Both the position numbers and the translations under genes were made by a program. The notes beneath the pieces are model-generated. The model was not told where the DNA came from, ran no database searches, and was given only the letters and a program-made list of their open reading frames with translations. From contig OZ287709.1 of assembly GCA_965649825.1 (NCBI GenBank), positions 248,001 to 312,000 on the forward strand: 64,000 nucleotides of DNA, in the 5' to 3' direction. Below are positions 4,798 to 60,100 of this stretch, one piece after another; position 1 is the first letter of the stretch; every line of letters begins with the position of its first letter. The stretch is from Penicillus capitatus. Lineage: Eukaryota; Plantae; Chlorophyta.

Positions 4798-6728
4798 ATG
4801 CGACGCGTTCTTCGACGACAACTGATCGAAGGGCCATGGCGGATCTTTTCGGCATCCCTCAGGGAGCGTGTCGTTGAGAGTCCCTTCGCCTTTGAGCGCT
4901 CTACGGGTGCTGCTCCGCGGACCCCACTGTCTGCCATAGGGAAGCGATTGTTCTGGAGCGGAACAAAGCACACTGCCCGTGTATCGAGCAATCCCTCAGC
5001 TCTCGGTTTTCGAAGCACCCGTGTGGCGGATGGCGCTTCGATAGGACGGATACACAACGTGCGTTGGTTGGCGAGAAACCGACCCGTACAACAGGAAGGC
5101 ATATCCCCAATGGCATCCGATCCGTCGGCCGAACCCCCCGCACCGGCAGAAGAGGACAAAAAAGCGAGCTCTTCACTGTCTGAAGCCAAAGACACGACCA
5201 CCCCCTCCCAAACAACTGCCTCTCGCTCTCAGGTCGCCACATTCTCCCCCTCTCCCTTCTGATCACGGCCTTTACTGAGGTAGATTGCGTCTGTGGTGAA
5301 TCACTCGGCTCTGGTCATCACGCGCAACATCGAATGGTATTCTCTTCCGTCTGTTGCCTGTTCGATGTCGTTCTGTGGTATTGAGGGGGACTGTTCTGCT
5401 GGGCTTTGAGCAAGTGCGTCGGTCATTGGTCGGAGAAAAGAGTGAGGAGCGTTTGCTGTGGGAGTTAGGCAAACAAGTATACCGTACTGGACGAAGAGGG
5501 TGAGACAGTGGCACTCATTGCGGAAGATCTCAAGGGATTTGGCGATGCCATTGGACGACAGCTCCTAAAAACGAGACGGAGCTTTACAGCCACAGTCTTC
5601 AGCGCGGACGGTTGAGTCATATAGAGTGCGAGATGCATTGTGTTCCGACACGTGTCCTGCTACAGGTTCCCAAGTGATCTTCCGCATCCGACGGCCGGCT
5701 TACTTGATCAACAGCTCCATGTACGTGGAGAATGGATCGGGTGATGTTCTGGGGGAAATTCAGCAGCGCTGGCATCTGTGGCGGCGGAATTATGATCTCT
5801 ACCTAAACAAGGCACAGTTCGCCCGGATTGAAGGGAATTTTCTTGCCTGGGAGTTTGAGCTCAAAGATGAGAAAGGAGGTATCCATCATCACACTTTTGG
5901 AGGATGTGACTGATGTGTGACATTTCAGGAACGTTGGCATTGATCGATCGAAATTTTCAGGGGTTTGGCAAAGAGATCTTTACCGATGCCGGAAAGTACG
6001 TCATCCATTTTGGCGAGAGTCCGATTCAAGCGGCCGAAACGGCGACGAAGACGCTGAAAGCGCGGACAAATGACCCAAACCTGCGGGCAGTGACACCCAT
6101 GGCGAAGCTGAGGACAGGGGTCAAAGTCATCCCTTCTGTCACAGGAAACCAACTGGTCCTCTCCTGTATCCTTCCGCCCAGGTGCATAGACCCCTCCCTG
6201 TGTCATAGGTCGTGCAGAAACGGTTGGAATTGACTCAGAGAATGATTGCATTGGCGTGCGCCATGACGATTGACTACGATTACTTCTCTCGACATTCCAG
6301 TGCTCTTCGACACTTTATCCCAGTCAATGAAACGTGAGATCTCTCTCTGTGTGATCCAGGTGGAGCTGGTTATCTGGCGCCTCCGATCATTTTGCCACTG
6401 CCCGGTGGAGGAGAAGCCCCGGCCGATGCTCCGGCGGGCGATACAGCGGCAACTGGTGCGGTGGATGTTGTTTCATCAATTGGATCATGATGTGACGGAC
6501 GTGTCTGCAGGAGAGACGTCCACCGGACAAGCGGGCTCAGGCGAAGGAGATACGCTACTAGGTACATCACCATCGACCGTCGGAGAAACACTGGGAAAAT
6601 GTTCTCGGCGTGCAGGAGGAGATGAAGAGGTGTGGACAGCCGATGAGAGCGAAGTGTTGGACAGCGGCGAAGGCGGCGGCGTTCTTGGCGGTCTATTCGA
6701 GAACTTGGACCTCTTTGGAGACTCCTGA
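4798..6728 (+). CDS. Phospholipid scramblase-family protein (AIM25-like), probably mitochondrial, multi-exon
   Basis: Arg/Ser-rich N-terminus. Spliced exons give ALVITRNIEWGTVLLGFEQANKYTVLD, FRIRRP, GEIQQRWHLWRRNYDLY, EIFTDAGKYVIHF and ALACAMTIDYDYFSRHS, followed by a Gly/acidic tail. Confidence 0.85.
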
Positions 6729-7063
6729 CGCGCACTGCGTGTGTGACAGTATCTCCGAGAGATCTCACTCGTAAGTCACACATCCGTTCGACCTTCACTC
6801 AAATGATCATACCGATGCATTTCCTGCCGTTTTTAGATCAAACAGAATAGCAGAATGCCTTTCGATAAGGGCGATGGATAACTTCACATGAAAAGAGATA
6901 TAAACCAAACGTCAACACACAGGCGAAATCCATCACAGAACAAAGTGCTGTATGCGAATGTGTATGTTCGTGGCGGTAGAGGACGGCGTCATTGTGAACA
7001 GATACTCTGATTCCTGAATCGTGTGACGACTAAGTGCTTCATTTCGCCAACAGTGTCCTGCCA

Positions 7064-9253
7064 TTACGCTGTCTGCAGATCTTCTGTGACCAATACGGTC
7101 TCTGCGTGCGCATCCTCTTCTCTCTGCACCTCCTCTTCTTTTGTTTGCCCGTTGCTCTCGAACGGCAAAATGTTGTGCGTCCTGTCAAGCGTGTGACAAA
7201 GAGTGACAAAGAGTGAGATGGCTGACTTCATGTAGGTGAGGAATTGTCCGGGGAATTCGGCTAAGAGTTCCTTGGCGAGTGCCTCGCCGTTGTTTTTGTA
7301 TTTTTCAAATTCGACGAACTGTACGATGTCTCTTTCGGCATAGACCCCGTCTTCGGACAGTAAGACATCGTCCGAATCCAGCTCGACCATCTTCGAAAAA
7401 TCTTCCTTTCCTACGCCGACAAGCATGATCGATAACGGAAGACTCGATGCGGCAATGATCTCGCGTTTCACACGCTAGAGACAGACAGACACACGGAATG
7501 GCGTGCATCATAGGAATCGAGAATGGATCGAGACGCACTGGCATGTCCAGCAAAACGCCATCGGTGATCATCAGCAGACAGTAGTACTTTCGATGCGAAT
7601 CTCTAGCCGCCATCGTCGCCGCCGCCTTAAGTACTGGACTGAAAAATGTCGGTCCGGCCAATGTGACGCGATTCAGTGCATCCCTACCAGATGCGAACGC
7701 ATCAAGGCCGGTCGAGAGAGAGATACGTGCCTGTAAGCATCCAGGACGCCACGGACGCCTTGGCACTCGGGAGCGGCGTCATCGCCGTTGACAGCGAAGC
7801 AATGACTGACGACTTTGTCTTCTCCGGGGAGTTTTGCTCCGAAGCCCCACGTCGGGAAGAGCTGATCGGTGTCGTAGGCCTCCAACACACGTCCGACTCC
7901 AAAAATAGCTTCTTCGTAGACATTCAACCTCCGGTCGCCATCTGTGGTCTCCGTCAATATGTGGTGCAGGGATCCAGGATACTCGGGCAGTCCATTGGAA
8001 CGCGTGAAATCGATGGCGACCAGAAAACAAATCTCAAAACCGGATGCGATGTACTCCAAAAACGAAGGAGAGGGTGTTCTCTCGTATTCTGATGGACACA
8101 CAGAGATGAGTCCGTAGGGAATCCAGTCGATAGGGATCACCTCGGATAAAGAGTTCTCCGACGTTTTGTCCATCTTTTTTCAAAACCGATGACACCGCGG
8201 ATCCTGTTTAGAAGACAGACCTGTCACATCACAGAATCTTTCCACGCTTTACCTTTGGCGGCGCTTTCGATGTCGTTGAGTGAGAGCGTGATTTTGCCGG
8301 CGGGCTGATGCGTGCCTCGGCTTTTGAAGTAGAACAGCTAGAGAGGCACATTTCAGTCGATCGCCGTTTCCACGCGTCTGACCTCGATGAGCAACGGACG
8401 GCTGACATTTGCATTGCACAGAATTCTCAGTCGCGTCTCGAGCGGCTTCCAGATCAATGGCAGATCGCCATCTGACGGCCGCAGGACTTCGGATCGATAA
8501 GCAGGGATCCACGTTTCCCCATCGCCGTGTTGTTTACTGATTCTGTAGAAGACGCCTGATGCTCGACTGCTGCTGAGACGCGCTCCAAGAACGAGTTTCA
8601 CTTCATCGGACTGATTGCTTTGCTCCTCGTAGTAGATCGAAACCTGATGTGACATGCATCTTCCTTGATGTGACAGAAAGAGTGAGAACTTTGCTCTCGC
8701 TCATCGGAGTATTGTTTTCATCAAGCAAAGGCAACGTGCAGTGTCCCTGGGACTCGGTGACGATATCGGCCAACGTAAACGCAGCAGCGCCCAAGAAATC
8801 CTAGCCCATTATGATGTGACACATGAGTGCAATGGATAAAACTGTCGAATCGGCACTTGATCGTCCAGTTTCAGATCTTTGACACTTCGGTCTTCATCGG
8901 CATCGTACAGAACGACCTTCATTTGCTGAAGACGCTCGAATTCGTAGAGCACTTGGAAGGACCGAACAAACTTCGGATCTACAAGACCACGAGCATCTCA
9001 CGCACTCTTTTCTCCACCCCATTCCACTCCGTTACTCAGATTATTGGGTACGACCTCTGTTCGGCCCACTTCTCGCTGGCCGTCGTCCGTGACCGTATAG
9101 AGGACGGCAAATGGGTCAGATAAACTGCACATGGTGTGTAGAGTAGTCATGAAGAGTGATAAGTGTGAGATTTCTATACCTGAGGATATCTTTGTTGACG
9201 AGATTTGTGCAGGCAAAGCTCAACTCGACCTTCACGCGCAGTGTGGGGAACAT
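7064..9253 (-). CDS. Copine (C2-C2-vWA), BONZAI-like, multi-exon
   Basis: KVELSFACTNLVNKDILSKSDP (C2A), SFLEYIASGFEICFLVAIDFTRSNG, FPTWGFGAK, LLMITDG, LPLSIMLVGVG and RDIVQFVEF. The start codon (9253) is uncertain. Confidence 0.92.
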
Positions 9254-10829: not shown

Positions 10830-13800
10830 ATGAGCGACTCAAACAACGGAGCCTACGGCGAGGTAAAGCATCCTAGGGAACGAACGAACATACCGTAGAG
10901 GTGAACGCAGGCGGACGGTATGGAAGACCAAGTCCAAATTCAGAAGCTTGATGTACTGGCGGCACACCAGAATCGTTTTCAAGTAAGCCAGCTCCCTGCG
11001 TTGGTACGTGCGGCTCGACGAAGCTCGACATCGTAGTTGGAGAATTTCTATGGAGCTCTGCGACGAGCGGGACAGCGACGTTCAAAGTTTACTCTCTTTC
11101 GTGGAGGGCGTCAAGGAGGTGGTCTCGCCGACGGAGAGTTCACCGTGGACGACATGTTGCTTTACTCGCCGGTAAGTACAGGGGTGTCTGTCGTTGCATG
11201 AAGTGATGGGGGTATGTTCGTTCGGTGGATAGGATCCGATTCCAACTTCTTTGCTAAAACTGAGCAACGACTACGCCAGTCGTGCAACGAAGATGTTTGT
11301 ATCGATGCTAAAGTACATGGGTTTGGGCAAAGAGTATCTCACCGATCAACAGAAGGTGGAAATTGCTCAGAAGCTGCTGCACCAAGGGCTGAAAAGACCC
11401 GAGCTGAAAGATGAGCTCTATATGCAACTCATTAAACAGACGAGGGGCAATCCGAGTCTGGATGGCAAGCTGCGTGCATGGGAGCTGTTCCATCTCGTGA
11501 CATCTACCATGCCTCCGTCCAAAGTGTGACCGCATAGTAGTGTGATCTGGATCGATATATGGCGATGATGTGACAGGAGTTTGTGGGATTGGTGACTGAG
11601 CATGTCCATCTGGCATCGCATGGCGACGTCGAAGAGCAGATCGTACGGGAGATCGCACTGCGTTCGTGGACTTCCATGAAGCGATCGCTCATCGCCGGTG
11701 CCCGAAAGACTCTCCCCGCAACAGAAGAGATCCAGTGCCTTCTTTCTGGCAAGGCGCTGACGTGCATCGTCTACTTCTTGGACGAGACTTTCGAAGCGAT
11801 CAACTGCGATTTGACAACGACGGTCCAGGAAGCTATGAAGCAATTGGCAGACATCATTAAACTACAGAACTACAGTACATTCACGCTCTTTGAGTGTCGC
11901 AAAGTTGTTGGCCCTCGAAGTACGGAAGACACCGTCGATGAGCATATCATACTGGACGATAACAAATACATTGCTGATGCACTGTTCGATATCAAGAATC
12001 CCAAAAATTCAAGAGAAGGTATCCAAAGCAAATTGCTGGTGAAGAAGAAAATGTTTAGAGAGACGGATGAATCCATTACCGAACCGCAATTTATCAATCT
12101 CTCATACATTCAGGCTCAGTATGATTATTTGCTGGGCAATTTTCCCTTCGTGCAAGAGGATACGGCCCAGCTCTGCGCTTTGCAGATTCAGGCAGAATTC
12201 GGATCGTCGATTCTGGAAGTGGAAGAGGAACTGTCAGCTGCTGTTACCAAATACATTCCCACACCCGTAAGACCACCCCACCCGTGCTTATGCCTTAAAT
12301 GCGTGTCCTTCGTAGTCTGCTGCCTCACGACCTCATGAAGAGTGGGTGCAAGACGTGAAGAGTCGATATCGCAGTTTGGATCAATTTTCGAAAGAAGAAG
12401 CCCGATTGCATTTTCTGAGAATCTTGCGCAGTTTGCCATACGGCAATTCTATTTTCTTCCCTGTCAAGAAGATGGAAGATCCAATCGGTCTCCTGCCTCA
12501 GAAACTGATTTTGGGCATCAACAGAAGGGGCGTCCATTTCTTCAAACCCTCTCCCAAAGAATACCTCCATTCTGCTGAACTTAGAGATATCATGCAGTTT
12601 GGATCCAGTAGTCAGGCTGTCTTTTTCAAGATGCGTGTATCGGGGGTACTACACATCTTTCAATTTGAGACGCGACAGGGAGAAGATATCTGTCTAGCTC
12701 TGCAGACACACATCAATGATATCATGATGAAGCGCTACTCGAAATCCAAAGCCGCCGCCACTGCTGTACCGGCAACAGACAGCCAACCACAGGCACAGGC
12801 GACGGAATCGCATTCGGCAGCCGATGCCCAGGCCGCCGGCGCCCGTACCGGTCCAAAACACGAAAAGCATGCCAATCAGATGCAGAAGACATTGGAAGAG
12901 AAGGCCAGAATGATCGACGAGCTGCAGAAGCAGGAAGAGAAACTGCGCCAAGAGAAAGATCGCGTGGCTGAGGAGCTGATCGAGGCACGGGAGAAACTCA
13001 AGGTCGAGGAAGATCAGCTGAGGGAGTTCAAAGAGACAAAGCGGAAACTCGAGAGCGATCGATCAGGACTCTTGGCTCAGATCGACGAGGCAAAGGCTGC
13101 CGTAAAGGAGGCCGAAGCCAACAAAGCCGCCGCCGTTGACGCCGCCCGAGAAGCTGTCGATGCCAAGATGGTCAAAGAGCTGCAGAAACAGATCCACAGT
13201 GCGACAGACGAGCTGCAGAAAGTTCAGGATCGTGTACAGGAGCTCGAGAAGGAGTACAAAGACTCGACCAAAGAGAAAGAGCTCATGGAGAAGAAGATGC
13301 AGAGGCTAGAGAAATCAAGGGACAACGAAACGCGTGAGCTGCGGGACAAACTCGAAACGGCCAAGGCATCCGTGGGCGATCAGCTGCAGGAGAAGGAGGT
13401 CCGAATTGAAGAGCTCATGAAGGAGCTATCGAAGACAACGGAGCTGTACAATGCAAACAAGGTGGAGCTGGAACAGATCCGGACAGATCTGAACGAACTG
13501 GATGACTTGAGGGAAATGAAACAGGACGTCGAGCGAAAAGAGAAGCTTCAGAAAAAAATCATCGCCGATCAGGCCAAGCGCCTGGACGAACTGGAAAAGC
13601 TTCACAAAGAAGAGCAGATGTTGCGCAAGAAGTACCTCAGTATGATGGAAGACATGCAAGGCAAAGTCCGTGTCTACGTGCGATTGGGCCAAGAGGCGCC
13701 GTCCGAAGGCATCGTCGAAGTGGTCGACGAATATACCTTGGCGAAGAAACAGGCCGATCGCTTTGCCGTGCGTGAGGAGTTCGCTTTTGATCAGGCCTAC

Positions 13801-14839
13801 GGTCCAGAACAGTCGAATGAACAGGTAAAGAGTGAGAAGTGTGAGAATGTATGAGCGTTGTTGTGGGTTTAGGCGTTCGAGACGATAAAGCCTGTCACAT
13901 CACGTTGTGTTGAGGGATACAATGTGAGCGTTGTGGGCCACGGTATGGTCGGAAGCGGCAAATCCTTTACGATGTTTGGCGTCCCTGGCAACGATGGCGT
14001 CATTACCCGTGCCATCGACGATGTTTTCGCTACTGCTAAGAAACGCTCAAAGAAATGGGACTTTGTTCTCAAAGCGTCTATTCTTGAGCTGTATGGAGAT
14101 GAGCTAACAGATCTGCTCAATCCTGGCGCGAAGAAACTGTCGGTGCGTCGAGATGTCAAAGGCCTGGTGCATGTGGTGAATGCCTCGTTTACTGTCCTCT
14201 CCTCCACCGATCTGCTCAAAGAGTGTATCACCAAGGCATTCAAGAAGCGAGATGAGTTGGGACACGATGCTTCCGATTCGAATCTGTTCGTCACGGTGAC
14301 GGTGGAATGCAGCAACAAAGAGACGGGTGTGATCAACAACGGTCGTCTGGTGTTTTCGGATCTGGTCGGATGCAATAAGGGCAATGCGAGTATGGATGCC
14401 CTTGAGAATGTCATCAAGGCATTGGAGGCAGAACAGCAAGAGATTCCTTACACGGCAAGCGGTCTCACAAGACTCTTTAACGATTGTCTGGGTGGCAATT
14501 CCAAGACCCTCGTCCTGGTCCACGTCAAAGCGGATGCCGATCTGTGGGAAGAGACGAAAAAGGTAAGGCGCATATCTATCGAACCATCCATCGTATGGAA
14601 ATCGATGCCTGTGTGGCTGGCTGCCGTTCTAGACGATGGAATTGGGGTTGGCGATTCGCAAAGTGAAGAACGATATCGAGAAGCACGAGATCAACAAAGA
14701 TATCCTGAAGCTGAAGAGACAGCTCGATGCTCTGAAAGAGCGTGCTGGGATACCGAAGGAACTGTTGGATGCAGTGGACATGGTGGAGATCACAGATCAA
14801 AAAGCAGCGCCGTCAGATACTGCCCAGGCCGCCAGTTAA
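10830..14839 (+). CDS. KCBP: Kinesin-like calmodulin-binding protein (MyTH4-FERM-coiled coil-kinesin-14) with degenerate motor
   Basis: DPIPTSLLKL and DELYMQLIKQTRGNP (MyTH4); LPYGNSIFFPVKKMEDPIGLLP...HIFQFETRQGEDICLALQTHINDIMM (FERM); long coiled coil; C-terminal motor with GMVGSGKS and LGGNSKT; CaM-helix-like LKLKRQLDALKERAG. First-exon assignment is tentative. Confidence 0.92.
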
Positions 14840-15067: not shown

Positions 15068-16732
15068 TTACATTCCGTTCGATTGGATGGGATTGGTTTT
15101 TGAGTGCGATGACAGGGAATAATCATCCGAACGGGTGATATCGCTTTCATGAGTCGCCTGACGCGTCGTGCCGTTAAATAAACTCTTGAGCGTCGCCGTC
15201 AGTCCACCCGTCGATCGATTTCTCTTTGCAGAATGATCGTGATCAACAGACATGGCAGTGGATGTCGCCAGATGACTGTCTTCTGAAGAGTATCGTGCTG
15301 TGCTTTCGACCACAGGCATGGCGGCGGATCGAGTGGCAGGACTCTCAAATGTACCGGCCGCTTTGTGCGGGACACGGTTAACGGAATGCAGCGTTTCCAT
15401 ATCGTCTCGCACCGTCTCTGAGGCTTTGGAAGGAGAGGCAACATCGCCGCCGCCACTGCCTTGGACATCCCGAGAAGACGATTTCTCGTAGAACAGAATG
15501 TAACCACGATCCGTGATCTTGGAGAACTGCGCCGGCGATCCGAAGGTCCGTTCCACCCAGGCATCGGGAATCGCCTCGACGTGATCATCGTCAAACAGCA
15601 GCCAATGTCCATGACTCTTCACCAACGACACATAATGACCTAAATGCAAATCATTAAACGCATTTAATGAGTACGGATCTTCTCACCATGATTCAGACTG
15701 CTGCCGGAATGGACGACGACAGCAAAGAGATTGTAGACGTCATCGGAGGACGGTGCATCGTCTGTTGTGTTACAGAGTTTCAGTTCCATGGGGAAGACGA
15801 CGCGATACATCAGTTTTCGCATCCTCTCATCGAAACGCATGAGGTGACAGATGAGAATCTGCGGTAGCTGTTTGATCTTATTCTGCCTGTAAGCCTCCTG
15901 ATGACACTGACAGACTTCACAAAAGTATTTATCTCTCTTGTCCAACACAGCTTTGGCACTAGAACAGCGTCGCAAGAGTGAGAATGATGTGACAGGCGGC
16001 GGAATGAAAAGACAGAAGTGTGACCTCGACTGACCTGTATCGCTTCAGACAGCTGGTCAAGGAACAGTTGTGCTCGATGGCCAGCTGCAAATCCATGAAG
16101 ACCTCTTCTCGACTCGTCACGGTTTCGCAGCACAGACACTTCGTCTCGTGGACCAATTTGCCTTCGAAGATTTCTTGAACCCATGTCGGTCGAGGCGGTC
16201 CAGACGAAGAGGCACTCGGCTGCTTTTGTTTCTGCTCCTTCTCCAGAATATCGGATATCCGCAGAAAGAGATGATTGAGAAATTCGTGGGCGTCCTGTGC
16301 AAGACAGAGACAGATGTGTATGGGCTGCCTCGAGGGACATGGAATGGACAGACCTGATGCATGAAGCCACAGAACTGATCGTTATCTCTCTTTAATCTCT
16401 GTACGAATTTCTTGGGCGATATCACTCCAGATTTTTTGCGATGTGAGTGAATCTAGCGATGGGACACACATATCGTTTGGCCGTTGGATGTGGATGTAAT
16501 CCCACACCTGTACAAAGAGATCTGCCAGACAGGTGTAGATCGTTTCTTCTGCCTCTCTGTCCATCGACTCGGCAAAAGCGAGGACCCCTTCGCGAAACGG
16601 CGTGCAGAAGTAGAGCGCTTGGAGCACGGAATTGCAGTAACAGGTGTTTCCAAAGTTCTCGAGTCCGAAGTAGCGTTCCTCATCGGGGAGAGATGTGAGA
16701 CTTTGGCCCAGTCGACTGGAAGTCATGCCCAT
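15068..16732 (-). CDS. Ubiquitin carboxyl-terminal hydrolase, USP12/46 (UBP3/4) type
   Basis: MG start, [21 protein letters not shown] Cys box, CETVTSREE and FCEVC zinc ribbon, [18 protein letters not shown] His box, and a Ser/Thr-rich C-terminal extension. Confidence 0.93.
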
Positions 16733-17047: not shown

Positions 17048-18445
17048 ATGCAGCGGACGCGACGGCCAGGGATGTATGATTTGATTGTGGTCGGAGCTGG
17101 ACTCCATGCACTCACCCTACTCTGTGCTCTCTACGAAGAGCGACCCATGCATACAAACCTTATCGATGCCGCCGGAGGCGTCACGCGCAGCAAACAGAGT
17201 GAGAGGACAATGAGAGCTGAGCTTAAGAGACGGCGAAGAGGGAGAAGGGATGAGAGAGAGGAGAGGGTGTTCGTGGTGGATCGATGGGGTCGATGGTTAG
17301 AGAACTGGAAGCGACAGTTCGACGTGCTCGGCATCGACGCCCTGCGTTCCAACGCTTCGTTGCATCCGGACGCTTTTGATCCAGAGATGCTCTTCGAGTA
17401 TGCTCGTATGCAAGGATATTCGATGGGACAGGCGTTTGAAGAGATCACTCATGTGCCAAGAGGGAAACAGTTCGTCGGTCCATTCCAGGTGCCGAAAACG
17501 GCATTCTTCAATGCGTTCTGTGAATCGCTCATCGAGAGCTTCGGTCTGCGAGACATCGTGCAGCAGGGTGATGTGACATCTCTAGAGGGTGTCACATCAG
17601 AAGGCGGCGCGTGTAAGAAAGGTGTGAGAGTGTGGATGAAGGATGGGACGTCAGTGATGGGACGTCGAGTGGTCGTCTCCATCGGACACTCAAATCGTTC
17701 CAATGTGCCAGACTGGGTCGATCGTGACCTCCGCCTTCCAGCTCAGACACTCGTCCACGTATGGGACTTGGTACATCAAGATCTATCACACTTAGATCTA
17801 AAGAGTGAGAGAGTGGCTGTGGTGGGCGGTGGACTGACAGCAGTGCAGCTGATGCAACTGGCCATGCGTTGCGGCTGTCGTCGTGTGTATCTCATCAGCC
17901 GACGGCCACTAACCGTCCGTCCTTTCGACAGCGACCTGACCTGGAGTGGCCGACTGCGCCATGCAAAGCTTCAGAAGTTCTGGAGTGAAGAAGACATGGA
18001 GAAACGCATGGATCTGATCCGAGAGGCTCGAAGGGGAGGGACCGTCACATCATCTGCCTACAGAACCCTGACGGAAAGGATGGCAGATGAGACGTGTACG
18101 CTCCTAGAGGGTATCGAGATCTGGGATGCGGAATGGAGGGGGTCATCGTTCCACGTGGAGCTCTCCAACCACGAATCTGTTGAGGTCGAGCGCATCTGGT
18201 TGGCAACTGGAAGCGCCATCGATGTGACGCAGGAGCCTCTCTTTGCCAGAATCCTGCAAGATTACCCTGTCCGCGTGTGTCATGGGTATCCGGTGCTGGA
18301 TGCTGATCTCAGATGGCATCCAGATCTGGATGTGTATTTCATGGGAGCCTATGCCAGTCTTGCCCTCGGGCCAGATGGCGTCAATCTTGCCGGGGCGCGA
18401 CGTGGCGCCTTTCGTCTGAGAAAAGAGTTCAGCGACAGGCCCTGA
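17048..18445 (+). CDS. FAD/NAD(P)-binding oxidoreductase (N-hydroxylating monooxygenase-like fold), intronless
   Basis: DLIVVGAGLH (FAD GxG motif), VAVVGGGLTA (NAD(P)H motif), IWLATG and LALGPDGVNLAGAR. The start could be 17048 or 17072. Confidence 0.8.
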   Translation: MQRTRRPGMYDLIVVGAGLHALTLLCALYEERPMHTNLIDAAGGVTRSKQSERTMRAELKRRRRGRRDEREERVFVVDRWGRWLENWKRQFDVLGIDALRSNASLHPDAFDPEMLFEYARMQGYSMGQAFEEITHVPRGKQFVGPFQVPKTAFFNAFCESLIESFGLRDIVQQGDVTSLEGVTSEGGACKKGVRVWMKDGTSVMGRRVVVSIGHSNRSNVPDWVDRDLRLPAQTLVHVWDLVHQDLSHLDLKSERVAVVGGGLTAVQLMQLAMRCGCRRVYLISRRPLTVRPFDSDLTWSGRLRHAKLQKFWSEEDMEKRMDLIREARRGGTVTSSAYRTLTERMADETCTLLEGIEIWDAEWRGSSFHVELSNHESVEVERIWLATGSAIDVTQEPLFARILQDYPVRVCHGYPVLDADLRWHPDLDVYFMGAYASLALGPDGVNLAGARRGAFRLRKEFSDRP

Positions 18446-21836: not shown

Positions 21837-21860
21837 GGAAGGCGAGAGACAAACGTCACA

Positions 21861-23641
21861 TCATGCGGCAGGCGACGACCGAGCCTTCTCGAATCCCCTC
21901 TTGGCCAACAGAGCCACGCCGTACGAAGCCTCTCCTGCACCAGGGGGAACAAGACTCGAGTGCGTGGACACGGACCGAGAGACAGACCGAAGGGAGCGGC
22001 TTCGACAGGCACGCCCAGAGATCGCCTGCGCATCTCCGTCCACTTCAGATTCGCCGCTCCGCCTCCGGCCGTCCACACCCGTCTGACCGCCCCTGCCCCG
22101 AGCGTCTGCAGCCGACGATAGCACTCAGCTTCGATGGACGCCATTCCTTCCAGCATGCCTGCACCGATGTCGATCAGCGCAGCACCCACTCGATGACCTG
22201 CCTGCCTTGGAGAAAGAGAGCGTCGTCTGCCGGGCGTGGTTCGAGACGCGGTTGGTACAGCGGATCGTTGAACGGGAATCTCTCTCCTGGCGACGCGAGC
22301 GGATAGTAGTTCAACTGCGACGGCGCTTCGTGCTGCATCCTGTCGGTGAGTGTGCGGATCTCCTCGTCCGTAAAGTACTGCCTCAGCACAGCCCCTCCCG
22401 TGTTCGACGCTCCGCCCACCAGCCACATGTCGCCCAGTCGATGCGAGTAGACGCCGTGCTCGACGGCATCAACGCGTTTGCTGCTCAGCATCTTGATGGC
22501 GAGCGTCGATCCCAGGCTGGTGACAGCCTCTCCCTCTTCCTGCGCGCCGGATGCCAGAAATGCGGCGATGCTGTCCGTGGTTCCGGCGCAGACGACACAG
22601 TCGGTGTGCAGACAGTACTTCTGCCGAACCGCGTCCCGAACGCGTCCCGCGACCGTGCCCGGTGGCACGATCGCCGAAGGCAGAAGCGGAAAGAACTCCT
22701 AGCTCCGCAGGAGAATGCGTCAGAAGGAGAAGTCGTTGCAAAACGGTGTGCGACCTGAGACTGAAGCCAGGACGGGTATGCCGCTGTCTCCGGATCGTAT
22801 CCCAGTTTCAACGCGTTGGTGTCGTCCGACTGGCGGCAGTTTCCTGCTCGAAACCCGTCGTCGAAACCGGCAAGGCGCGCAGAGGGAGAGAGACACCGTG
22901 CATGAGATAGGACAGCCAGTCTGCTTGATGCATCACTCTGGGACGCCTTCCCCGTTCTCGATGCCGCTGCCAGGTGTTGTCCAGGTGCCACTGGAGCACC
23001 TTGCACAGCGTCGAGGTGGAGGCCCTTCCCGGATGGCGCTCTGGTGCAATGGCCTGTCTCGAATGCGGGACCAGTTCAAGTCAACACGCGTCGACTTGTC
23101 CGGTACCCTGGCGCGGTCGACCGCCGCTGAGCTCTGTGATGCGTTGTACCATTGAGGCGGCTCCAGAGACTCTCCTGTCCCCTCGTCGACAAGCATGGTG
23201 GTAGAGGATGTCCCGTCAAAGGCCAACGACACAATCCGCGTCGTCAGCTCTTCCGGTATGCGTCCGAACAGCTCATCCAATGCCCTGCAGTCAATTTCGC
23301 GCACGCGACATGCACTATCCTGGTCGCGGAATCGCGCATACCGCTGCCATGCAACATCCCACTCTTCCTCCGGTCGACGGTCGTACGGCACTCTCCCTTC
23401 GTGCAAGGCAGACGAACTCCCTGAGTCGCAGGCTCTTCACATCAACAGTCCGTCGACGATCGGACAGGTTCTTGCCGTCGATCACCGTCGCCCTCGCTCC
23501 GGACGTGCCGAAATCGATTCCCAGGTAGACCGGTCCTTCGACGTACGCCGCCATCGCGTCTCCCATCCGCGGGACGCGTGCAGGGCCTCTCCTCCTCGTC
23601 GAACTCTGGGGAAAGGCACGCGGCTGCAGGAGGATCGCCAT
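21861..23641 (-). CDS. FGGY carbohydrate kinase, XK-1/D-ribulose kinase type, with transit-peptide-like N-terminus
   Basis: YLGIDFGTSGAR, AFDGTSST, QADWL, AGTTDSIAAFLASG, VTSLGSTLAIK, GGASNTGGAVL, AGGGAAN and EASYGVALL. The start (23641) is tentative. Confidence 0.9.
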
Positions 23642-23704
23642 CCGCCAGATGAGCAGAACAATAATCGCCTCATTCCCGTCGAGATTTCCCTGCGGCACTT
23701 TTCC

Positions 23705-27800: not shown

Positions 27801-27827
27801 AGTAACGCATCATCCAGTAACGAATGT

Positions 27828-39759: not shown

Positions 39760-41113
39760 TGACGGGGATACTTCGGACTCTGGCGCGCCGCGAACGCGCC
39801 GACGCCTATGCGAATGCGGAGGGACTGCAAGGAGTCAAAGCTGAGACTGGTTACATGGTGAGCCCAGTCAGCTTTATAGCCCTGGCGCCCGCGGACCGCT
39901 GTCATGTCAAGCAGCGGACAGCCTGTCCGGTCCGCGGGGTCGCAACCGTTATCGCGTACCCGTCAGGACTCCCCCAGCGGTTGACACAACGTTCACGAGC
40001 CAACCGCTCAACGGGAAGCGTACGACCAAGACGCGGGAAGAAACGTCGCGTCACCACACACACTCAGAGAGAATCGACGCAAAGAATGCACAATTGCGAA
40101 AAAATCACGGTCGTGACTGTGAACGTCGACCCGATGGCCGAGTCCGGACCGGATGGCGAGCCGCGAAGGGAAACTCTGTCGGCAATGGCTATTTACATAG
40201 CTAGACAGATACAGCACGGCAGCTCCGTTTAAATACCCCGGATTAGGAGGGTCACATCATTACGTAAGGCATATCGTCACACCTCTGTCACACCTCTCGT
40301 CCTGCGCTCCAATGATGTTCTGCTGGCGTGGCGCCACAGGGACGGTTGGCGCGCCATCAGCGACTCCTCGCCAGATGACTCGAGGCAGAACCAGTGACCC
40401 TTCACAGTGACAAGACCGCTCCGCCGCACATCACTGTCCCTGTCACATCATTATTCAGGGCATGGCAGCTCGGCTACGGCCCGCAGCTGCCGGCGCTGGC
40501 CGGAGGGCGACACGAAACAAAACGCCACAGAAACAGGCGCGAAGGAAAACCCAGGTGCGACCGCGCAACGGTCGGTCCGACGGGCCCACAGGGGGATGTC
40601 TACGGGCGGCAGCAGCGACGCCACAGCCTCATTGGGCTCGCGCTGCGCGCGCCACCCCCCCGCCTGCTTAGCAAGGCCACTCCGTGCCGTCGGCCGCGCA
40701 CATCAGCTCAGGACGGTCATCATGCCGTCGGTCTTCGGTCGGCCGGCTTCGTGGAGAGCGTCGTCTCTCCGGCTGAGGTCTTCAGCAGCGTCTTCCTCTG
40801 GCCGCTGACGGGGTCGGAGTCTTCCTCGGTCGGGCACCACTGACGGCAGCACCTCGTTCCTCCAGCTGTGGCATTGAGAGCGCCACTACCCCGGGGGTCC
40901 ACCAGTCTGACGGGGATTCGACAGACTCTGGCGCGACGCGTACGCGCCGACGCGTGTGCGGATGAGGAGGAACTGTAAAGAGCCAAAACTAAGACTGATT
41001 ACATGGTGAGCCCAGTCAGCTTTATAGCCCTGGCGCCCGCGGACCGCTGTCATGTCAAGCAGCGGACAGCCTGTCTGGTCCGCGGGGCCGTAACCGTTAT
41101 CGCGTACCCGTCA
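39760..41113 (-). mobile_element. Non-autonomous LTR retrotransposon (TRIM), 1354 bp, complete
   Basis: Two 206-bp direct repeats (39760-39965 and 40908-41113), each TGACGGG...CCCGTCA; 5-bp TSD GATTC (39755-39759 and 41114-41118); PBS TGGTGGACCCCCGGGG (40904-40889); PPT GGGGGAG (39975-39969); no pol ORF. Confidence 0.93.
39851..39878 (-). promoter_or_regulatory. LTR TATAAA box followed by TGTAA poly(A)-type signal (also at 40999-41026)
   Basis: The minus strand reads gggcTATAAAgctgactgggctcaccaTGTAA in both LTRs. TGTAA is the known green-algal polyadenylation signal. Confidence 0.65.
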
Positions 41114-50877: not shown

Positions 50878-52741
<1,864 letters not shown>

Positions 52742-52817
52742 AATGCCACGCTTTGGAACAAATGCGCGACAGATGTGTCGTTTAGCGTCCTTCGATTGAA
52801 GTTCATGGCGTCGCGCG

Positions 52818-54872: not shown

Positions 54873-56447
54873 CTAACAGGTGTCGCTATCAGACAGAGAA
54901 TCGAGAAGAGAAAGCGGGTAACTATAAGTCGTCGGTCCAACAGGAGAAGCGAATGCGTAATCGGAAAGCGAGAGATGATGTGCTTCGAGATCGACAAGAT
55001 CTGTCGTGACTTCTTCTTTATGCTCATCAGAAACATCCCTGTCCTCCTCTTCCTGGTGATCTCTCAAGAAATGCCCGAGTGCTGCGACGGAGACGACCAG
55101 CAGAGCTTTGCACGAGAAACCGAGGGCAGCTCGGATCCAGCCGCCACGAGGACGACACATGGCATTTCCTTGGGACAGCTTCTCAGAGACCGTCGTTCCT
55201 AAAACATTGCTCGTCTTGGAACTATCACGTGGAAACCAGTCATAATGCTCGAAACGCGGCTTGTGCTTTCGGGATGACGTCTGAGAACTATTCTCAGACG
55301 GCATCACACAAAGGCTCGCGTCATTGACGGACGCCTCCGATCGTGGGGTCGAAGGATCCGTTGTCAAAGATGATGATTTTTGGCCGAAAAGATTAACGAT
55401 GGCTTTGGTCAGAGACCTCTTCCTCTCCAATTTTTTAACAGAATACATGGCGTCTTCCCCATCCGTCAAGTCATCGGTATCATCCTCAATATCCGTCGTT
55501 TCCGAAACTGGAATCTGCGGACGACGACGGAATCGTCCTTGCTTGTAAAACATCGCTTGACGGGTCGTGGCGGCGGCGGCGGCGGAGGTCGTCGAGGATG
55601 ACAAGGATGGCCTGCCATATCCTCTATCGTCCATGATATCGGTGGCATGGACCTCCGAGGCGAATGCGACGCGCGTGAGATCCACATTCCATGCGCTGCC
55701 ACGTTCGGCCCGCTCCGCTCCGAAGCCTTGCCAAAAATTCGATGGTAATGTGGGAGACAGACGCATCGCCTCGTTCTTGCCACACATCAGATCGTCCAGC
55801 GATGTATCGCAGCTCGTTTCGGAAGCGGCATGAGATTCTGGATGAACCTCCCCCAAATTTGCCAACTCATCCATATAGTCCGTCACTTCACTTCCGTATT
55901 CCAGCACCGTGTTCTGAGATGAGAGAGATGCGTTGCGAAGTCGACGCGTCGAGAAGCGCGAGATATCTGAGGCGCTGGACGCATGTGGACGGCGGCCTTC
56001 TTCAAATTTGCCGCAGGTACTGTCTCGGCCATCCGAAAGGCATGATGATGAAAGATTGGGTGCCTTGGTGGCGATCGAGATCGGTCCATCATGCTTGTCT
56101 TCTCTTTCCTTCGGTTCTGGATGTGCTGTCACGCGTCGCGCAAGCAGATGGGTCAGTCCGCCTCGTGGTTGCTGGTCTGATGGTCTTCCATGTCGCCAGC
56201 GCTGCTCGCCTGTTAAGATATCGTAGTAGAGATTTCCTTTCGTTTTGGGATAAGGTATTTTTGAACAGAACCGATCGACAGGGTCGTTTCGAAACAGAGG
56301 TGCCTCGGGCGAGGGTTTAGGAATACTACTGCTGCGGCGGCGATGCGCGTAGCTCTGCGTTTTGCGAAGGGTCCCTTTCGCATCTGCTCCACCTGTTGAC
56401 GAGCTCGGGTAGTATTCTAACGATTTCGATGTTTTTCCTGCAAACAT
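54873..56447 (-). CDS. Hypothetical Ser-rich protein with a C-terminal TM helix, intronless
   Basis: Uninterrupted frame of more than 520 codons from ATG 56447; low-complexity Ser/acidic tracts; TM-like KALLVVSVAALGHFL near the end. Confidence 0.65.
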   Translation of the reverse strand: MFAGKTSKSLEYYPSSSTGGADAKGTLRKTQSYAHRRRSSSIPKPSPEAPLFRNDPVDRFCSKIPYPKTKGNLYYDILTGEQRWRHGRPSDQQPRGGLTHLLARRVTAHPEPKEREDKHDGPISIATKAPNLSSSCLSDGRDSTCGKFEEGRRPHASSASDISRFSTRRLRNASLSSQNTVLEYGSEVTDYMDELANLGEVHPESHAASETSCDTSLDDLMCGKNEAMRLSPTLPSNFWQGFGAERAERGSAWNVDLTRVAFASEVHATDIMDDRGYGRPSLSSSTTSAAAAATTRQAMFYKQGRFRRRPQIPVSETTDIEDDTDDLTDGEDAMYSVKKLERKRSLTKAIVNLFGQKSSSLTTDPSTPRSEASVNDASLCVMPSENSSQTSSRKHKPRFEHYDWFPRDSSKTSNVLGTTVSEKLSQGNAMCRPRGGWIRAALGFSCKALLVVSVAALGHFLRDHQEEEDRDVSDEHKEEVTTDLVDLEAHHLSLSDYAFASPVGPTTYSYPLSLLDSLSDSDTC

Positions 56448-57145
56448 ATTCCTACACCCGTTGTCCTGTGACGGATGATGAGGGTATGCATCCGAAAAGC
56501 ATACTTTGTTAACTGTGGAAAGATTTTTGAGAGACGCGGCGAAGGGACAACTAAGCGTTTGAATAGTGAAGGCCGCAGCTATCAAAAGATGAAGTTTGGG
56601 GCACACGCAGGTGAGACGGAACGGACGGCGTGTGAGAAACGATGTTCAAAAACGTGTTGACGAAACAAGGGATCGTACGTGACTGGCTTTCACGAACACA
56701 TCTCAATGCATTACCGTGTAAAACACAAGTGGGTTCCATCCAGCTTCCAATAGCAGAGCTGGTTTTCCCTCGCCACAAAGTGCAGAATCTGAGCCACGTG
56801 TCTGGGAACGGCCTCCTTCCTCTCTGCAGATGGTGACCCTGCCTCGATGTATCCTTTCATTGATGGACATGGCATGTGGCGGTTTTGCCTCGGCTGTCAC
56901 ATCTTTCGACCACAGCCTTTGTGTGCTATTGGCAGGCTAAACAAGAATAGAGTCGGGTGCTTTGCGGTCTAAAGGCCGAACGAGGCACGAACCGTACGTT
57001 GTAGCCGTCTGAGGGTCGTAGGATTTGGAATCACCGATTGGCTGACGTGGTCGTTCATTAAAGCCATGAAGCAACACTCGCGTTATCGCTCACCAGTCGT
57101 TTGAGTATTTCCCTGGCATTTCCGTTCTTTCTTGTATTTGTCCCA

Positions 57146-60100
57146 ATGCGACGACGCACCGCCTTTCAGACGATATGCCTTCTGCTACTACTGTCGACCG
57201 TTCTGGTCCCAATTTCGGGCCAAGTAAATCCCACTGGTTTGCGGTTCACGACCGGAGACGGAGAACCCGCGGTAGACGACGAACCCTCAGAGGAAGTAAC
57301 GTCGAATGAAGAAAAGCCAAGCCCTGAGGAAAACGCAGAAACCGAACCGCCAGCGAAGACCACGGGTATCGTCACCAGTTTGCCGCTAGCACACGATATG
57401 GACGAAGCTGAGACGGAAAAACCGGCAGAGAAAGAAACGCCAAGCTCTACAAAGGACGAAGAACCAGATGAACACGGAGCGCCTGGCGGTCACATAGAAC
57501 ACGAGGAAGACGGGGCGCATGAAAGTAAAGCGACAACAGCCACAAGCGAGACACCGTCGCATAAGCACTCGACGGACGATGAAGCGGAACATGGAGATAG
57601 CAGCAACCACGAAGCGTCGGACGCCGAAAGTCACAGCGATATCGTAACCACGGCGTCGAGCTCTACGGGAGAGGCACATGGGGCACATACCAACGAGCAC
57701 AGCGCGGGTGGAGAGCACGACGCAACGACGTTGTCACATGAAGAGGAAGAAGCGGAGTGCGAGGAGCATCATGGCGGAGCCGACGTGGTTTTGTTGCTTT
57801 TCTTTATGTTGTTGATTGGCCTCGTCACGCGCTACGCTCTACACAAACTCCCTGTGCCCTATACGGCACTGCTGTTGGTACGTCGCTCGCCGCGGAGAGG
57901 CGCGGACTGTTCGTACGAGGCAGCAATGAACGGTGGTTGGTTGTTGTAGATTATGGGGATGATTCTCGGCGCCATGCAGATTCGACTAACAAGCCACACG
58001 AACGAAGAGGACATGATGCCAGGACACCAAAGCGAAGAAGAGGCTCATAACGAAGAAGGTCATGAAGAAGGAGGCCATGAAGGAGGCCATGGCGGTCACG
58101 GTGGACACGCCGTCAATGTACAAGGCCACGACCATTGGGAGAAATTCGCCATTGGAATAAACGCCTGGCGGGTAAGACCAATCGATGTCTATGTGATCAT
58201 GGATGATGACCTCACACATTTGTGTGATGTGACAGTCACTGGAGCCCGAATTGATGCTTCTCGTCTTTCTTCCTGCATTGATCTTCGCCAGTGCCTTTTC
58301 TCTCAATTTCCACATTACCAAGAAGAGCTTTGGTCAAGTACGCATACCTTAAGAAGGTAGATGTGGAAGGATAAGCAAATGATGTGACAGGTCTTGACAT
58401 TAGCCGGACCTGGTGTGGTAATTGGGACCTGCATTACAGCCGTCTTCGTCAAATATTCATTTCCTTACGGTTGGTGTTGGCCAAAGTGTTTCATGTTTGG
58501 TGCCATGATCAGCGCCACAGATCCCGTCGCCGTCGTCGCCCTGCTCAAAGAGGTCAGCCATCACCATCTCCATTCCTCTCGTTCAATTCTTGTGCTTAGG
58601 TGGGTGCGTCCAAGAGATTGGGTACTGTCATTGAAGGAGAGTCGCTCTTCAATGACGGAACGGCTTTCGTGTTCTTCTTACTCTTTAGAGACATGATCCC
58701 GACGAATTCTGACTGTCTCAATGACAAATACAATTGCAGGGAGGAGCCCGTCGGCAGCAACATCTGCGAGGAAGATGTCTTTGTGCCACAAGGATGCCTC
58801 AACGAGCGCGATTTGGGTCAGTCGATTACATTCTTTCTGCAGTTGGCACTCGGAGGTCCTGCCATCGGTATTCTCTTTGGCTTGGGCGCGACGTTCTGGA
58901 TTCAGTACATCTACAACGATCTGCTGACAGAGATTTCTGTGACATTGGTGACGGCTTACCTGACGTTCTACGTTGCCGAAGACGTCGCCGAAGTGTCCGG
59001 CGTCCTCGCCGTTGTGGCACTGGGCCTGTTTATGGGTTCCTTTGCCAAAGACAGGATCTCATCGGCCGTCCACGAACCGATGCATGTCTTCTGGGAAATG
59101 ATGGAGTACTTGGCCAACACACTGATCTTTGTCTACACAGGTCTCAAGATCTCCGTCGAACTATTCGATTCCACGAATCCGAGTTCGAATTTCATCGGGA
59201 CCAGAGAGTGGGGTCTCGCCGTCTTCCTCTATCTCATGCTCCAGTTGATCCGGTTCGCCACGATCTTCATGCTGCTGCCAGTGCTCCAACGCATGGGGTA
59301 CGGTATGACCTGGAGAGATGCCTTGGTTGCCGTCTGGGGAGGACTCCGTGGAGCGGTGGGTCTGGCATTGGCCCTGATCGTTCAACTGGATCGCAATCAC
59401 ATCCCACCATCGTTCAGGAGTTACACCATCTTCTATCTCGGTTTCGTGGTGATCGCCACGCTTTTGCTCAACGGCACCACGATGCCCTATCTCCTGAAGT
59501 TCCTGGGGGTGACGAAGACCAGTCCGGAGAAACTGGAGGTTCTTTTCTATCTCCTCAAGGAGATGGAAGAGAACGGAGACAAACGCGCTATGGACGGCGA
59601 AGACGAGCTTTTGGGTATTCCCGATTACACCGAGATCCACAAATTGACAGCACTGAATATTTCGAAGATTGTCCCGACGAGTAAAGAGATTGAAACGGTC
59701 ATCGAATCGGCTACTGTGACAAACCATCCTGCGGGATTGAACATCCGTCACAGCCTCCATCAAAGCAGTCTCAGATTTAATCCTACAGGACGAGGCAGTC
59801 TTGCCGAGATTGTAGAAGAAGTGGCACGGGGTCCAGAAGAGCGAGTGTTGGATGTCGAGAAGCCGCAGAATCAGACGATGCTTGAACAGTTGAAGGCAAA
59901 GTTCTTCGGCGGCCAGCATCGACGCTTCGATCTCGACGACAGTCCCAAGAAAGAGACCTTCACTCCGGACATGTTGGTCCAGGACTTGAGATCGAGACTG
60001 CTGCAAGGTGTGAAGACGGCCTATGCAGAATGGCTGGAGAAAGGGTTTATTGGTGCCAAACCCATGTTCGATTTGATTGCTAGTTCCGATTACGCTATTG

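Follow-up and report, generated by a model that had tools for sequence, protein, structure and literature searches.

Very short introns are known from Giardia and Trichomonas, where a fused branch-point/3′-splice-site word ending in AG stands at the intron 3′ end; there, virtually every intron has the fused motif, always in sense and at an unvarying distance. Introners, described in algae such as Micromonas and Aureococcus, give rise to new introns; each is a copy of an entire intron, tens to hundreds of bases long. To our knowledge, regulatory words that reside in introns and are independent of orientation have otherwise been recognized only in the form of statistical, degenerate signals, like that of plant intron-mediated enhancement (IME). 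The Arabidopsis IME signal TTNGATYTG is over-represented in introns near gene 5′ ends, and the plant signal, which does not depend on splicing, takes effect when it lies in transcribed DNA no more than ~1 kb from the start (PMC6760150); thus, it also works from coding sequence. Among sites bound by TALE homeodomain proteins, PBX and PREP/MEIS recognize the half-sites TGAT and TGACAG (PMC6023610), and potato BEL5/POTH1 bind tail-to-head TGAC cores with short linkers, namely TTGACTTGAC and TTGACggTGAC (PMC3904721). Caulerpa, a bryopsidalean alga, has an expanded set of TALE genes (PMC6476727).

The window analyzed here, 64,000 nucleotides of nuclear DNA from Penicillus capitatus, assigned in the analysis to a siphonous, uncultured green alga close to Bryopsidales, contained 17 copies of the 9-mer TGATGTGAC/GTCACATCA, nine on the plus strand and eight on the minus strand, compared with about one expected. 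Every coordinate and strand of the original prediction proved exact, and the excess over chance that it claimed was observed against each background. Dinucleotide shuffles averaged 1.03 copies and never exceeded 4, so that 0/100 shuffles reached 17, and Markov models predicted 0.83 (order 3) and 2.53 (order 5) copies. When run on the window, both models ranked this 9-mer as the most enriched one, and its 8-mer and 10-mer extensions were likewise top-ranked. The word extends past nine bases, with eight copies of the 11-mer TGATGTGACAG, six of the 12-mer TGATGTGACAGG and four of the 13-mer ATGATGTGACAGG; the excess of (a)TGATGTGACAG(g) was approximately 15-fold. Positions 2, 3, 7, 8 and 9 of the 9-mer were essentially invariant and positions 1, 4, 5 and 6 variable, giving TGA-N3-GAC, and the class TGAYNTGAC was observed 31 times against 7.8 expected. 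AG directly followed the 9-mer in 8/17 copies, and five of these eight are not spliced at it; among the 14 copies not spliced at their own AG, it was present in five. The analysis covered one genomic neighbourhood of ~80 kb per species in two species, so that any genome-wide statement is an extrapolation.

The location of the copies agreed with the earlier classification: five genes have nine of them in a total of eight short introns, four are in coding sequence and four in spacer or TE-like sequence (Table 1). The intron-bearing host genes are scramblase, copine, KCBP, UCH and SOS1, with host introns of 45–76 bases, and the copies are clustered in certain genes (copine, KCBP, UCH, the monooxygenase-like gene and SOS1). 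Although introns make up well under 10% of the sequence, they hold 9/17 copies (binomial P ~1e-5 assuming 10%). We delimited 15 introns, 837 nt in total, and the motif was absent from seven of them. Within their introns, all copies of the window are placed centrally or towards the 3′ end, at 0–31 nt from the acceptor; one copy in the sister species introduced below directly follows the 5′ splice site. Relative to the host gene, five intronic copies are sense and four antisense; the corresponding counts for the sister species' syntenic blocks are seven and four. The claim that both orientations build acceptors was confirmed by reading frame and homology for four copies, namely TGATGTGAC-AG in KCBP 11524-11576 and in SOS1 58172-58235 and 58338-58390, and GTCACATCA-G in copine intron 8644-8689. 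If the 8223 copy's own AG were used, it would give a stop codon.

Table 1. Copies of the 9-mer and one variant, with positions in the window, strand, relation to the host gene and state in the sister species (a slash marks the splice junction)
Location	Position	Strand	Orientation and acceptor	Basis or reading	Sister species
Scramblase (probable) intron 6456-6510	6488..6496	+	sense, acceptor 14 nt downstream	frame change, GT..AG boundaries	exact (L010 8796), flanked by indels of 8 and 4 nt
Copine intron 8204-8252	8223..8231	-	sense, used acceptor 17 nt downstream	translation	11-mer kept beside 11-nt indel
Copine intron 8644-8689, 3′ end	8645..8653	+	antisense; GTCACATCA-G/ is acceptor		all 46 nt of intron 100% identical
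Copine intron 8644-8689, second copy	8666..8674	+	antisense		as above
Copine intron 8801-8856	8812..8820	+	antisense, acceptor 11 nt downstream		missing (only such intronic copy)
KCBP intron 11524-11576, end	11566..11574	+	sense; TGATGTGAC-AG/ is acceptor	MyTH4 frame MPPSK/EFVGL	GATGATGTGACAG kept; intron sequence upstream diverged
KCBP kinesin motor, coding	13894..13902	-	antisense	CCT GTC ACA TCA = PVTS	
UCH intron 15959-16034 (gene on - strand)	15985..15993	+	antisense, acceptor 26 nt downstream	Pfam UCH exons	9-mer exact (L005 8930) amid indels of 4, 7 and 3 nt
Flavin monooxygenase-like gene, coding, inverted pair	17569..17599	17569 +, 17591 -		GDVTSLEGVTS	1 mismatch in each copy
Flavin monooxygenase-like gene, coding	18044..18052	-		TVTSS	
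Spacer, ~25 nt 5′ of ATG of TMP-TENI-like ORF, in segmental duplication	21855..21863	-			not kept in paralogue
Spacer, aldehyde dehydrogenase gene 3′ end to reverse-transcriptase fragment, adjoining TATTTAAA	31881..31889	-			
Spacer, abuts palindrome TTACGTAA, ~20 nt from TATTTAAA	40251..40259	-			
Spacer, repeat-rich region, TGATGTGACAGG	40442..40450	-			
V-ATPase intron, one-mismatch variant TGAGGTGACAG	51629..51639	-	acceptor 14 nt downstream		exact motif
SOS1 intron 58172-58235, end	58225..58233	+	sense; acceptor	spliced alignment to homologues	kept (L006 9520)
SOS1 intron 58338-58390, end	58380..58388	+	sense; acceptor	spliced alignment to homologues	kept

The syntenic contig of a sister species (~87–89% DNA identity) was then compared. 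It carried 17 copies in ~73 kb, against 0.26–0.46 expected per 20 kb. Eight of the nine intronic copies, in both orientations, were identical there, a figure that covers the intronic copies, with the spacer copies outside it. Identity at intron sites outside the motif was 68%, and of the remaining 9-nt windows in introns 7.2% were fully conserved; indels occurred directly beside the kept copies at 6488, 8223 and 15985. The coding copies behaved like neutral sequence, two being kept and two changed. Gains and losses between the two species were point changes or small (3-nt) indels inside existing introns. The motif, exact in the sister species, was absent from three more distant relatives, with zero copies in L002 (64% SOS1 identity), Bryopsis and Ostreobium; in L002, the SOS1 introns are at the same positions and both orthologous introns lack the motif. 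This pattern clearly points to a nearly invariant 11-mer under purifying selection in two species. The excess, the intron location and the letter-for-letter conservation amid drifting intron sequence together indicate a real functional element. Three of the kept copies overlap acceptor regions, which are themselves conserved to some degree, and 2/8 motif-less intron 3′ ends were also perfectly kept in the sister species.

We put the probability at roughly 0.5 that (a)TGATGTGACAG(g) functions as a DNA site specific to this lineage, predicted to be read on double-stranded DNA by a sequence-specific protein. Sense copies occur as often as antisense copies, and the sister species has kept copies of either kind, which favours a DNA-level site and supports the earlier view that the word is not a one-strand RNA splicing signal. 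Selection blind to strand argues against a splicing signal as well as against a mobile-element footprint. We infer protein binding with an effect on host-gene transcription or chromatin. The putative site would lie mainly in the transcribed 5′ parts of a gene subset, where tiny introns would be the only spots for an 11-bp site without disturbing the protein. Copies near the intron 3′ end would be taken into use as acceptors because they offer CAG/G on one strand and ..ATCA followed by G/G on the other, and this acceptor role would be a secondary consequence and not the reason why the site is conserved. The locus would then be an example of a DNA-level site and a splice signal using the same bases, and a sharply defined 11-mer would offer a handle on gene control by DNA inside transcribed regions. 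Gene finders for these compact algal genomes should expect ...TGATGTGACAG/ and ...GTCACATCAG/ as frequent acceptors.

As a candidate reader of the DNA site, we propose a dimer of TALE-type homeodomain proteins (KNOX/BELL class), as a lead and not as a result, because the invariant positions correspond to two tandem TGA(T/C) half-sites ending in TGACAG. The consensus TGAT-G-TGACAG consists of two tail-to-head TGA(T/C) cores, of which the second is extended to TGACAG, with GA (2–3) and GAC (7–9) invariant. Animal DECA, TGATTGACAG (PBX + PREP/MEIS), and the plant BEL5/POTH1 sites resemble it in having two tail-to-head TGA(T/C) half-sites, of which the second reaches TGACAG, and TTGACTTGAC, bound by StBEL5/POTH1, has the same one-base linker and equal half-site spacing. 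TALE composite sites also work on DNA in either orientation. In contrast, half-site spacing here is one base longer than in DECA, and the first core, with A in front of it instead of T, reads TGAT and not TGAC. TALE composite sites lie upstream, whereas the motif here is intronic or within the gene body. No homeobox gene was found in ~80 kb of this genome. Several observations count against the DNA-site reading: transcription-factor sites are not usually so strictly identical letter for letter, and the canonical DECA, from which the half-site spacing is off by one base, has 0 exact occurrences in the window. The overlap of three kept copies with acceptor regions and the neutral behaviour of the coding copies also speak against it. 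The proposed bHLH/M-box likeness failed. The M-box/E-box TCATGTGAC (MITF-type bHLH-Zip) matches 8/9 letters, but the one mismatch abolishes the CANNTG core; all 17 copies have G at position 2, leaving no CANNTG E-box, and TCATGTGAC itself occurs once against 0.72 expected in the window.

Alternatively, the word could be an RNA-level splicing element, either an extended branch-point/3′-splice-site signal or an intronic splicing enhancer of tiny introns, which we regard as unlikely. Both orientations would be usable because each has a U-N-A-C branch-like core (GUGAC or GUCAC). The 9/17 intronic copies, all mid or 3′, fit this explanation, as do the three sense copies and one antisense copy that form the acceptor itself, the internal sense copies, which precede the acceptor by 14–17 nt as a branch point normally does, and the G/T-rich 3′ ends that motif-less introns also have. 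However, antisense copies are as frequent and as conserved as sense ones, the full 9–11-mer is kept and not merely a 4–5-nt branch core, and the distance to the acceptor varies, up to the sister-species copy just past a 5′ splice site. Moreover, 7/15 delimited introns do without the motif, L002 splices its orthologous SOS1 introns although they lack the word, and the identical 12-mer occurs in spacer and coding copies. The motif also mismatches the U2-pairing branch-point consensus, UACUAAC. As with the fused motif of Giardia and Trichomonas, three sense copies here end the intron in AG; unlike that motif, the word here is antisense in half of its copies, stands at varying positions and is missing from many introns. 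A pairing of sense and antisense copies within one pre-mRNA, looping out exons for splicing control or circular RNA, is very improbable: both polarities are present in each of copine, KCBP and the monooxygenase-like gene, but the two SOS1 copies are both sense, those of UCH are antisense only (one in the window, two in the sister species), scramblase has a single copy, as has the V-ATPase gene, and a 9–11-bp duplex is weak. A known non-coding RNA, such as a C/D snoRNA with box C UGAUGA, was rejected in view of the missing Rfam match, host introns that are too short and half the copies being antisense; Rfam at gathering score gave no matches in the window, and there were no tRNAs.

Spread from intron to intron, with the copies being passively retained and either stemming from a tiny mobile or introner-like element, as its ends or remnants, or produced by ectopic gene conversion, appears improbable. 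An unrelated 20-mer, AAGAGTGAGAAGTGTGAGAA, is common to one KCBP intron and one copine intron with 2 mismatches and in opposite transcriptional orientation, a dispersed ~180-nt repeat of the sister species (3 copies) includes the motif, and there is the inverted pair at 17569/17591. Nevertheless, the flanks of the 17 copies show no similarity, target-site duplication or terminal inverted repeat, and the SOS1 introns are older than the motif. The species differ by substitutions and 3-nt indels instead of by unit presence or absence, and relics under no selection would be expected to erode like the intron background (68%), whereas 8/9 were kept. The inverted pair was ruled out as an insertion, being ordinary coding sequence that aligns with homologues. 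As with introners, unrelated genes of marine algae have a repeated sequence in many of their introns, but only 9–12 bases are shared here and the introns predate the motif. Given the unrelated flanks, the motif-free SOS1 introns at the same L002 positions and the turnover by point changes, an introner/MITE-type element was rejected, and the suggested footprint of an intron-associated element found no support. Chance or base composition carries practically no weight. It would suit the four coding copies only, with frames GAT-GTG-AC or GTC-ACA-TCA and neutral-like evolution; for the intronic copies it is already refuted, since none of the 100 shuffles reached 17, the order-5 expectation was 2.5, and enrichment and conservation were seen independently in a second species.

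The DNA-site reading also invites comparison with IME. For 11/13 intragenic copies, the distance from the start codon is ~0.45–1.3 kb (predicted ATG; the range was picked post hoc), and some copies are coding, which may parallel plant IME. In contrast, the sequence is a different one, and the plant signal is degenerate and additive, whereas the word here is a nearly invariant 11-mer. A dual-use code is a further, rather unlikely proposal: a lineage-specific factor's predicted high-affinity site would stand at or in tiny introns, the same letters would be the RNA acceptor, and the bound protein would boost initiation from within the gene or slow the polymerase to aid recognition of 50-nt introns. 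Such a system would be recent in origin, because the three more distant Bryopsidales-type genomes lack the motif. If true, its initiation-boosting version would be a sharply defined algal counterpart of IME.

The core TGT[CG]ACA, described in the original prediction as frequent, showed a weak excess, with 31 occurrences where the order-3 model predicts 12 and the order-5 model 24; 12/31 fall within full motif copies. The sugar-transporter arrays contained a single copy (L004 4751), with zero within the window. A paralogous copy of the 21855 site was found at L001 20275, and the sequence context of the 40251 copy looks promoter-like.

We searched both strands of the window for the 9-mer TGATGTGAC (reverse complement GTCACATCA) and found 17 copies, nine on the + strand and eight on the - strand, at exactly the 17 positions counted by eye in the original prediction. 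Shuffling of the window with dinucleotides preserved (n = 100) gave a mean of 1.03 and a maximum of 4 copies, and Markov backgrounds gave expectations of 0.83 (order 3) and 2.53 (order 5). The word is the top over-represented 9-mer of the window, and its 8-mer and 10-mer extensions likewise rank first in over-representation. The 9-mer as originally noted is therefore real, but the true word exceeds nine bases: the longer forms TGATGTGACAG, TGATGTGACAGG and ATGATGTGACAGG occur 8, 6 and 4 times in the window. The 11-mer was matched exactly 8 times, with one mismatch about 20 times and with two mismatches 29 times. Together these make 57 matches with no more than two mismatches, against 24.5 expected, and the enrichment centres on the exact word. 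Within the 9-mer, positions 2, 3, 7, 8 and 9 are nearly invariant and positions 1, 4, 5 and 6 are variable, giving the pattern TGA-N3-GAC. No consistent partner half-site was seen within 80 nt of the copies, a runs test on their genomic-strand order (+ then - then +) was not significant (z about -1.2), and the only literature matches to the word were primers.

Gene structures were set by hand from Pfam hits and their coordinates, alignment to homologues and translation in three frames; a dicodon coding-potential track for annotating the whole window was overfitted and was dropped. Loci L003, L007 and L009 were covered by DNA search, sequence retrieval and alignment. Pfam analysis of the open frames identified several sugar transporters, a scramblase, a copine, GCD14, a UCH protease, a TMP-TENI protein, a KCBP-type kinesin (MyTH4-FERM plus motor), a flavin monooxygenase-like gene, aldehyde dehydrogenases, a V-ATPase subunit, CNOT11 and an SOS1-type Na+/H+ exchanger with a cyclic-nucleotide-binding domain. 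Gene structure is compact: introns are few and measure 45-76 nt. Exon delimitation confirmed the predicted distribution of nine copies in eight introns of five genes, four in coding sequence and four in spacers or repeat-rich DNA, as listed in the table. Introns account for well below 10% of the window, and the presence of 9 of 17 copies in them has a binomial P of about 1e-5, assuming 10%. Relative to the host gene, five intronic copies are sense and four antisense. The predicted acceptor use in both orientations also held in these gene structures: the motif's own AG serves once in KCBP and twice in SOS1, and GTCACATCAG|G, from the reverse complement, serves in copine. The copies are clustered in certain genes.

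Copies of the word in the window (orientation relative to the host gene) and copies of a dispersed repeat in the sister species (loci L006 and L009)
Feature	Position	Host gene	Orientation	Detail	Orthologous place in sister species
Intronic copy	6488	scramblase	sense	14 nt before acceptor; intron 6456-6510 predicted	exact
Intronic copy	8223	copine	sense	17 nt before acceptor used	exact
Intronic copies	8645, 8666	copine	antisense	one shared 46-nt intron	exact
Intronic copy	8812	copine	antisense		absent
Intronic copy	11566	KCBP	sense		exact
Intronic copy	15985	UCH	antisense		exact
Intronic copies	58225, 58380	SOS1	sense		exact
Coding copy	13894	kinesin motor			
Coding copies	17569, 17591, 18044	monooxygenase-like gene			
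Copies in spacers or repeat-rich DNA	21855, 31881, 40251, 40442				
Dispersed repeat	L009 3090-3270				
Dispersed repeat	L009 7463-7640				
Dispersed repeat	L006 13900-14080				

The conservation of the copies was then analyzed in a sister species. A query with the monooxygenase-like protein led to its locus, an 814-kb contig (ctg303746) from another metagenome that encodes a homologue of 91% identity. This contig is syntenic with the window, with a DNA identity of 88.6% in the copine-GCD14-KCBP-UCH-monooxygenase block and 87.1% in the V-ATPase-CNOT11-SOS1 block; the sequence from both motif-bearing species represents a single chromosomal neighbourhood. The sister species carries 17 copies of the word in about 73 kb, where 0.26-0.46 would be expected per 20 kb. 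Of the nine intronic copies, eight are exact at the orthologous place and only 8812 is absent. The surrounding intron sequence has diverged, with indels at three of the copies (8 and 4 nt at 6488; 11 nt abutting 8223; 4, 7 and 3 nt around 15985). An automatic count scored 15985 as unconserved through gap placement; the exact 9-mer is present at L005 8930. In 14 delimited introns, non-motif positions were 68% identical, and other 9-nt windows were fully conserved in only 7.2%. Under this null, the keeping of at least 7 of 8 copies has a P of about 7e-8, and that of 5 of 6, excluding the wholly conserved intron, a P of about 1e-5; three conserved copies overlap acceptor regions, which are partly conserved in their own right. 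The 46-nt copine intron 8644-8689, containing two copies, is 100% identical between the species, compared with 57-81% for other introns. Around it, only 3-4 differences were seen in about 120 nt. Copies present only in the sister species lie in a KCBP intron directly after its 5' splice site, antisense 5 nt before a UCH acceptor, and in an intron of the V-ATPase gene whose counterpart in the window has the one-mismatch variant TGAGGTGACAG; another is a synonymous coding change. The copy differences between the species are substitutions or 3-nt indels, as in ordinary site turnover, and the coding copies, two kept and two altered by one base, appear to evolve neutrally.

A signal read from one strand of the RNA cannot explain the antisense copies, which are as frequent and as conserved as the sense copies, as the original prediction had anticipated in setting a splicing signal aside. 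Moreover, the distance to the acceptor varies from 0 to 31 nt, the word lies once at the 5' end, about half of the introns are without it, and the identical 12-mer also occurs in spacers and coding sequence. A snoRNA box-C identity of the word was likewise rejected. The footprint of an intron-associated mobile element, which had been offered as an alternative, is also disfavoured. The copies have nothing in common outside the word, and passive relics would not survive in 8 of 9 cases where the background identity is 68%. The inverted pair 17569/17591, considered as a 31-bp mini-element or a 33-nt intron, is normal coding sequence that aligns with homologues. Furthermore, old introns gained the word later: in L002, a more distant syntenic relative (64% SOS1 protein identity), SOS1 has all four introns at the same positions, of 40-45 nt, with T-rich 3' ends and motif-free, indicating that the introns predate the motif. 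Exact copies were absent from 20 kb of L002, 28.5 kb around Bryopsis SOS1 and 25 kb around Ostreobium SOS1.

With both readings disfavoured, selection on the double-stranded sequence remains, and we put the probability that the word is a functional, protein-binding site at the DNA level at about one half. Selection would act on the double-stranded word, and in gene bodies tiny introns would offer the only room for an 11-bp site without protein change, which would explain the intron concentration. The word includes CAG|G on one strand and ends in ..ATCA, with G|G coming next here, on the other, so that a copy near an intron 3' end is a ready-made acceptor. Since the word is stricter than most transcription-factor sites, some other DNA-level reader or process may be in play. 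Of the 13 intragenic copies, eleven are some 0.45-1.3 kb away from the start codon, a range picked after seeing the data; this position recalls plant intron-mediated enhancement, where the active DNA word belongs to the transcribed sequence, lies no more than about 1 kb from the start and needs no splicing for its effect (PMC6760150).

As for the factor binding such a putative site, the suggested likeness to an M-box or bHLH site did not hold, because position 2 is an invariant G and the word thus contains no E-box; TCATGTGAC was not enriched. The invariant letters make up two TGA(T/C) cores arranged tail to head, of which the second continues to TGACAG; TALE-homeodomain dimer sites have the same layout. 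The animal DECA motif is TGAT plus TGACAG (PMC6023610), potato BEL5/POTH1 bind TTGACTTGAC and TTGACggTGAC (PMC3904721), and Caulerpa, which belongs to the same order, has an expanded set of TALE genes (PMC6476727). However, the half-site spacing in the word is one base longer than in DECA, and exact DECA is absent from the window. A TALE-homeodomain dimer is a candidate reader of low probability, named as a lead only.

Other sequence words were also observed. The word AAGAGTGAGAAGTGTGAGAA at 13828-13847 (+), sense in KCBP intron 13825-13872, recurs with 2 mismatches at 9152-9171 (+), antisense in copine intron 9125-9179; simulated sequences gave 0-2 matches even allowing 5 mismatches. In the UCH intron and in copine intron 8644-8689, the shorter AAGAGTGAGA adjoins the main motif. 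Of these copies, only the one in copine is conserved in the sister species. The palindrome CGATATCG occurs, mostly in coding sequence, at 8761, 12364, 14671, 26865, 41449, 45706, 57637 and 63451 (16 counting both strands, against 2.9 at order 3 or 9.5 at order 5). Many introns have G/T-rich 3' ends (…GTTGTTGTAG, …GGTGGATAG) in place of pyrimidine-rich ones, and donors vary (GTAAG, GTACG, GTCAG, GTGTG, GTTCT); introns 11172-11232, 13825-13872 and 57878-57949 exemplify these traits and lengths.

The window is nuclear DNA of an uncultured ulvophyte green alga near Bryopsidales. The nearest named relatives of its SOS1 are in Bryopsis (43% identity) and Ostreobium (37%), and closer relatives exist. 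A 315-kb contig in an ENA metagenome assembly matches the window at 99.7% identity; the two metagenome assemblies concerned, for the window and the sister species, are ERZ25074695 and ERZ26696514. Positions 48692-64000 differ from L001, the contig carrying the SOS1 protein, by 47 mismatches and 3 gaps in 15.3 kb, and the left end, 1-4048, is identical to the end of L004, a different contig of the same sample, indicating that the window derives from a different haplotype or assembly of this organism. A large inverted segmental duplication (25065-27482 versus 45096-47514) contains sugar-transporter genes, 82-95% identical; aldehyde dehydrogenase genes are also duplicated (32306-32395 versus 49846-49935), and the TMP-TENI region 21497-24518 has a 97.7%-identical copy at L001 19916-22937, just past the right end of the window. 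At 31466-31700 (- strand), downstream of an aldehyde dehydrogenase gene, there is a degenerate reverse-transcriptase fragment (…LFAIYVNDLP…). In the sister species, a 909-aa RVT_1 ORF that looks intact (L005 12389-15118) is inserted after the monooxygenase-like gene, at a place where the window has no insertion. The dispersed repeat of the sister species, about 180 nt in three copies, includes TTGATGTGACAAC; no counterpart was seen in the window, whose D1 repeats (39758, 40906, 44158) are unrelated to it. Lastly, TATTTAAA occurs only twice in 64 kb, at 31894 and 40228 (- strand), on each occasion no more than 25 nt from a spacer copy that reads TGATGTGACCC, and these sites may be TATA-type promoters. 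The palindrome TTACGTAA, a bZIP-type site, occurs at 25705, 40260, 46864 and 62943 (4 places, where about 0.2-0.45 would be expected); each of them looks intergenic, with one adjoining copy 40251 and two lying in the inverted-duplication arms.
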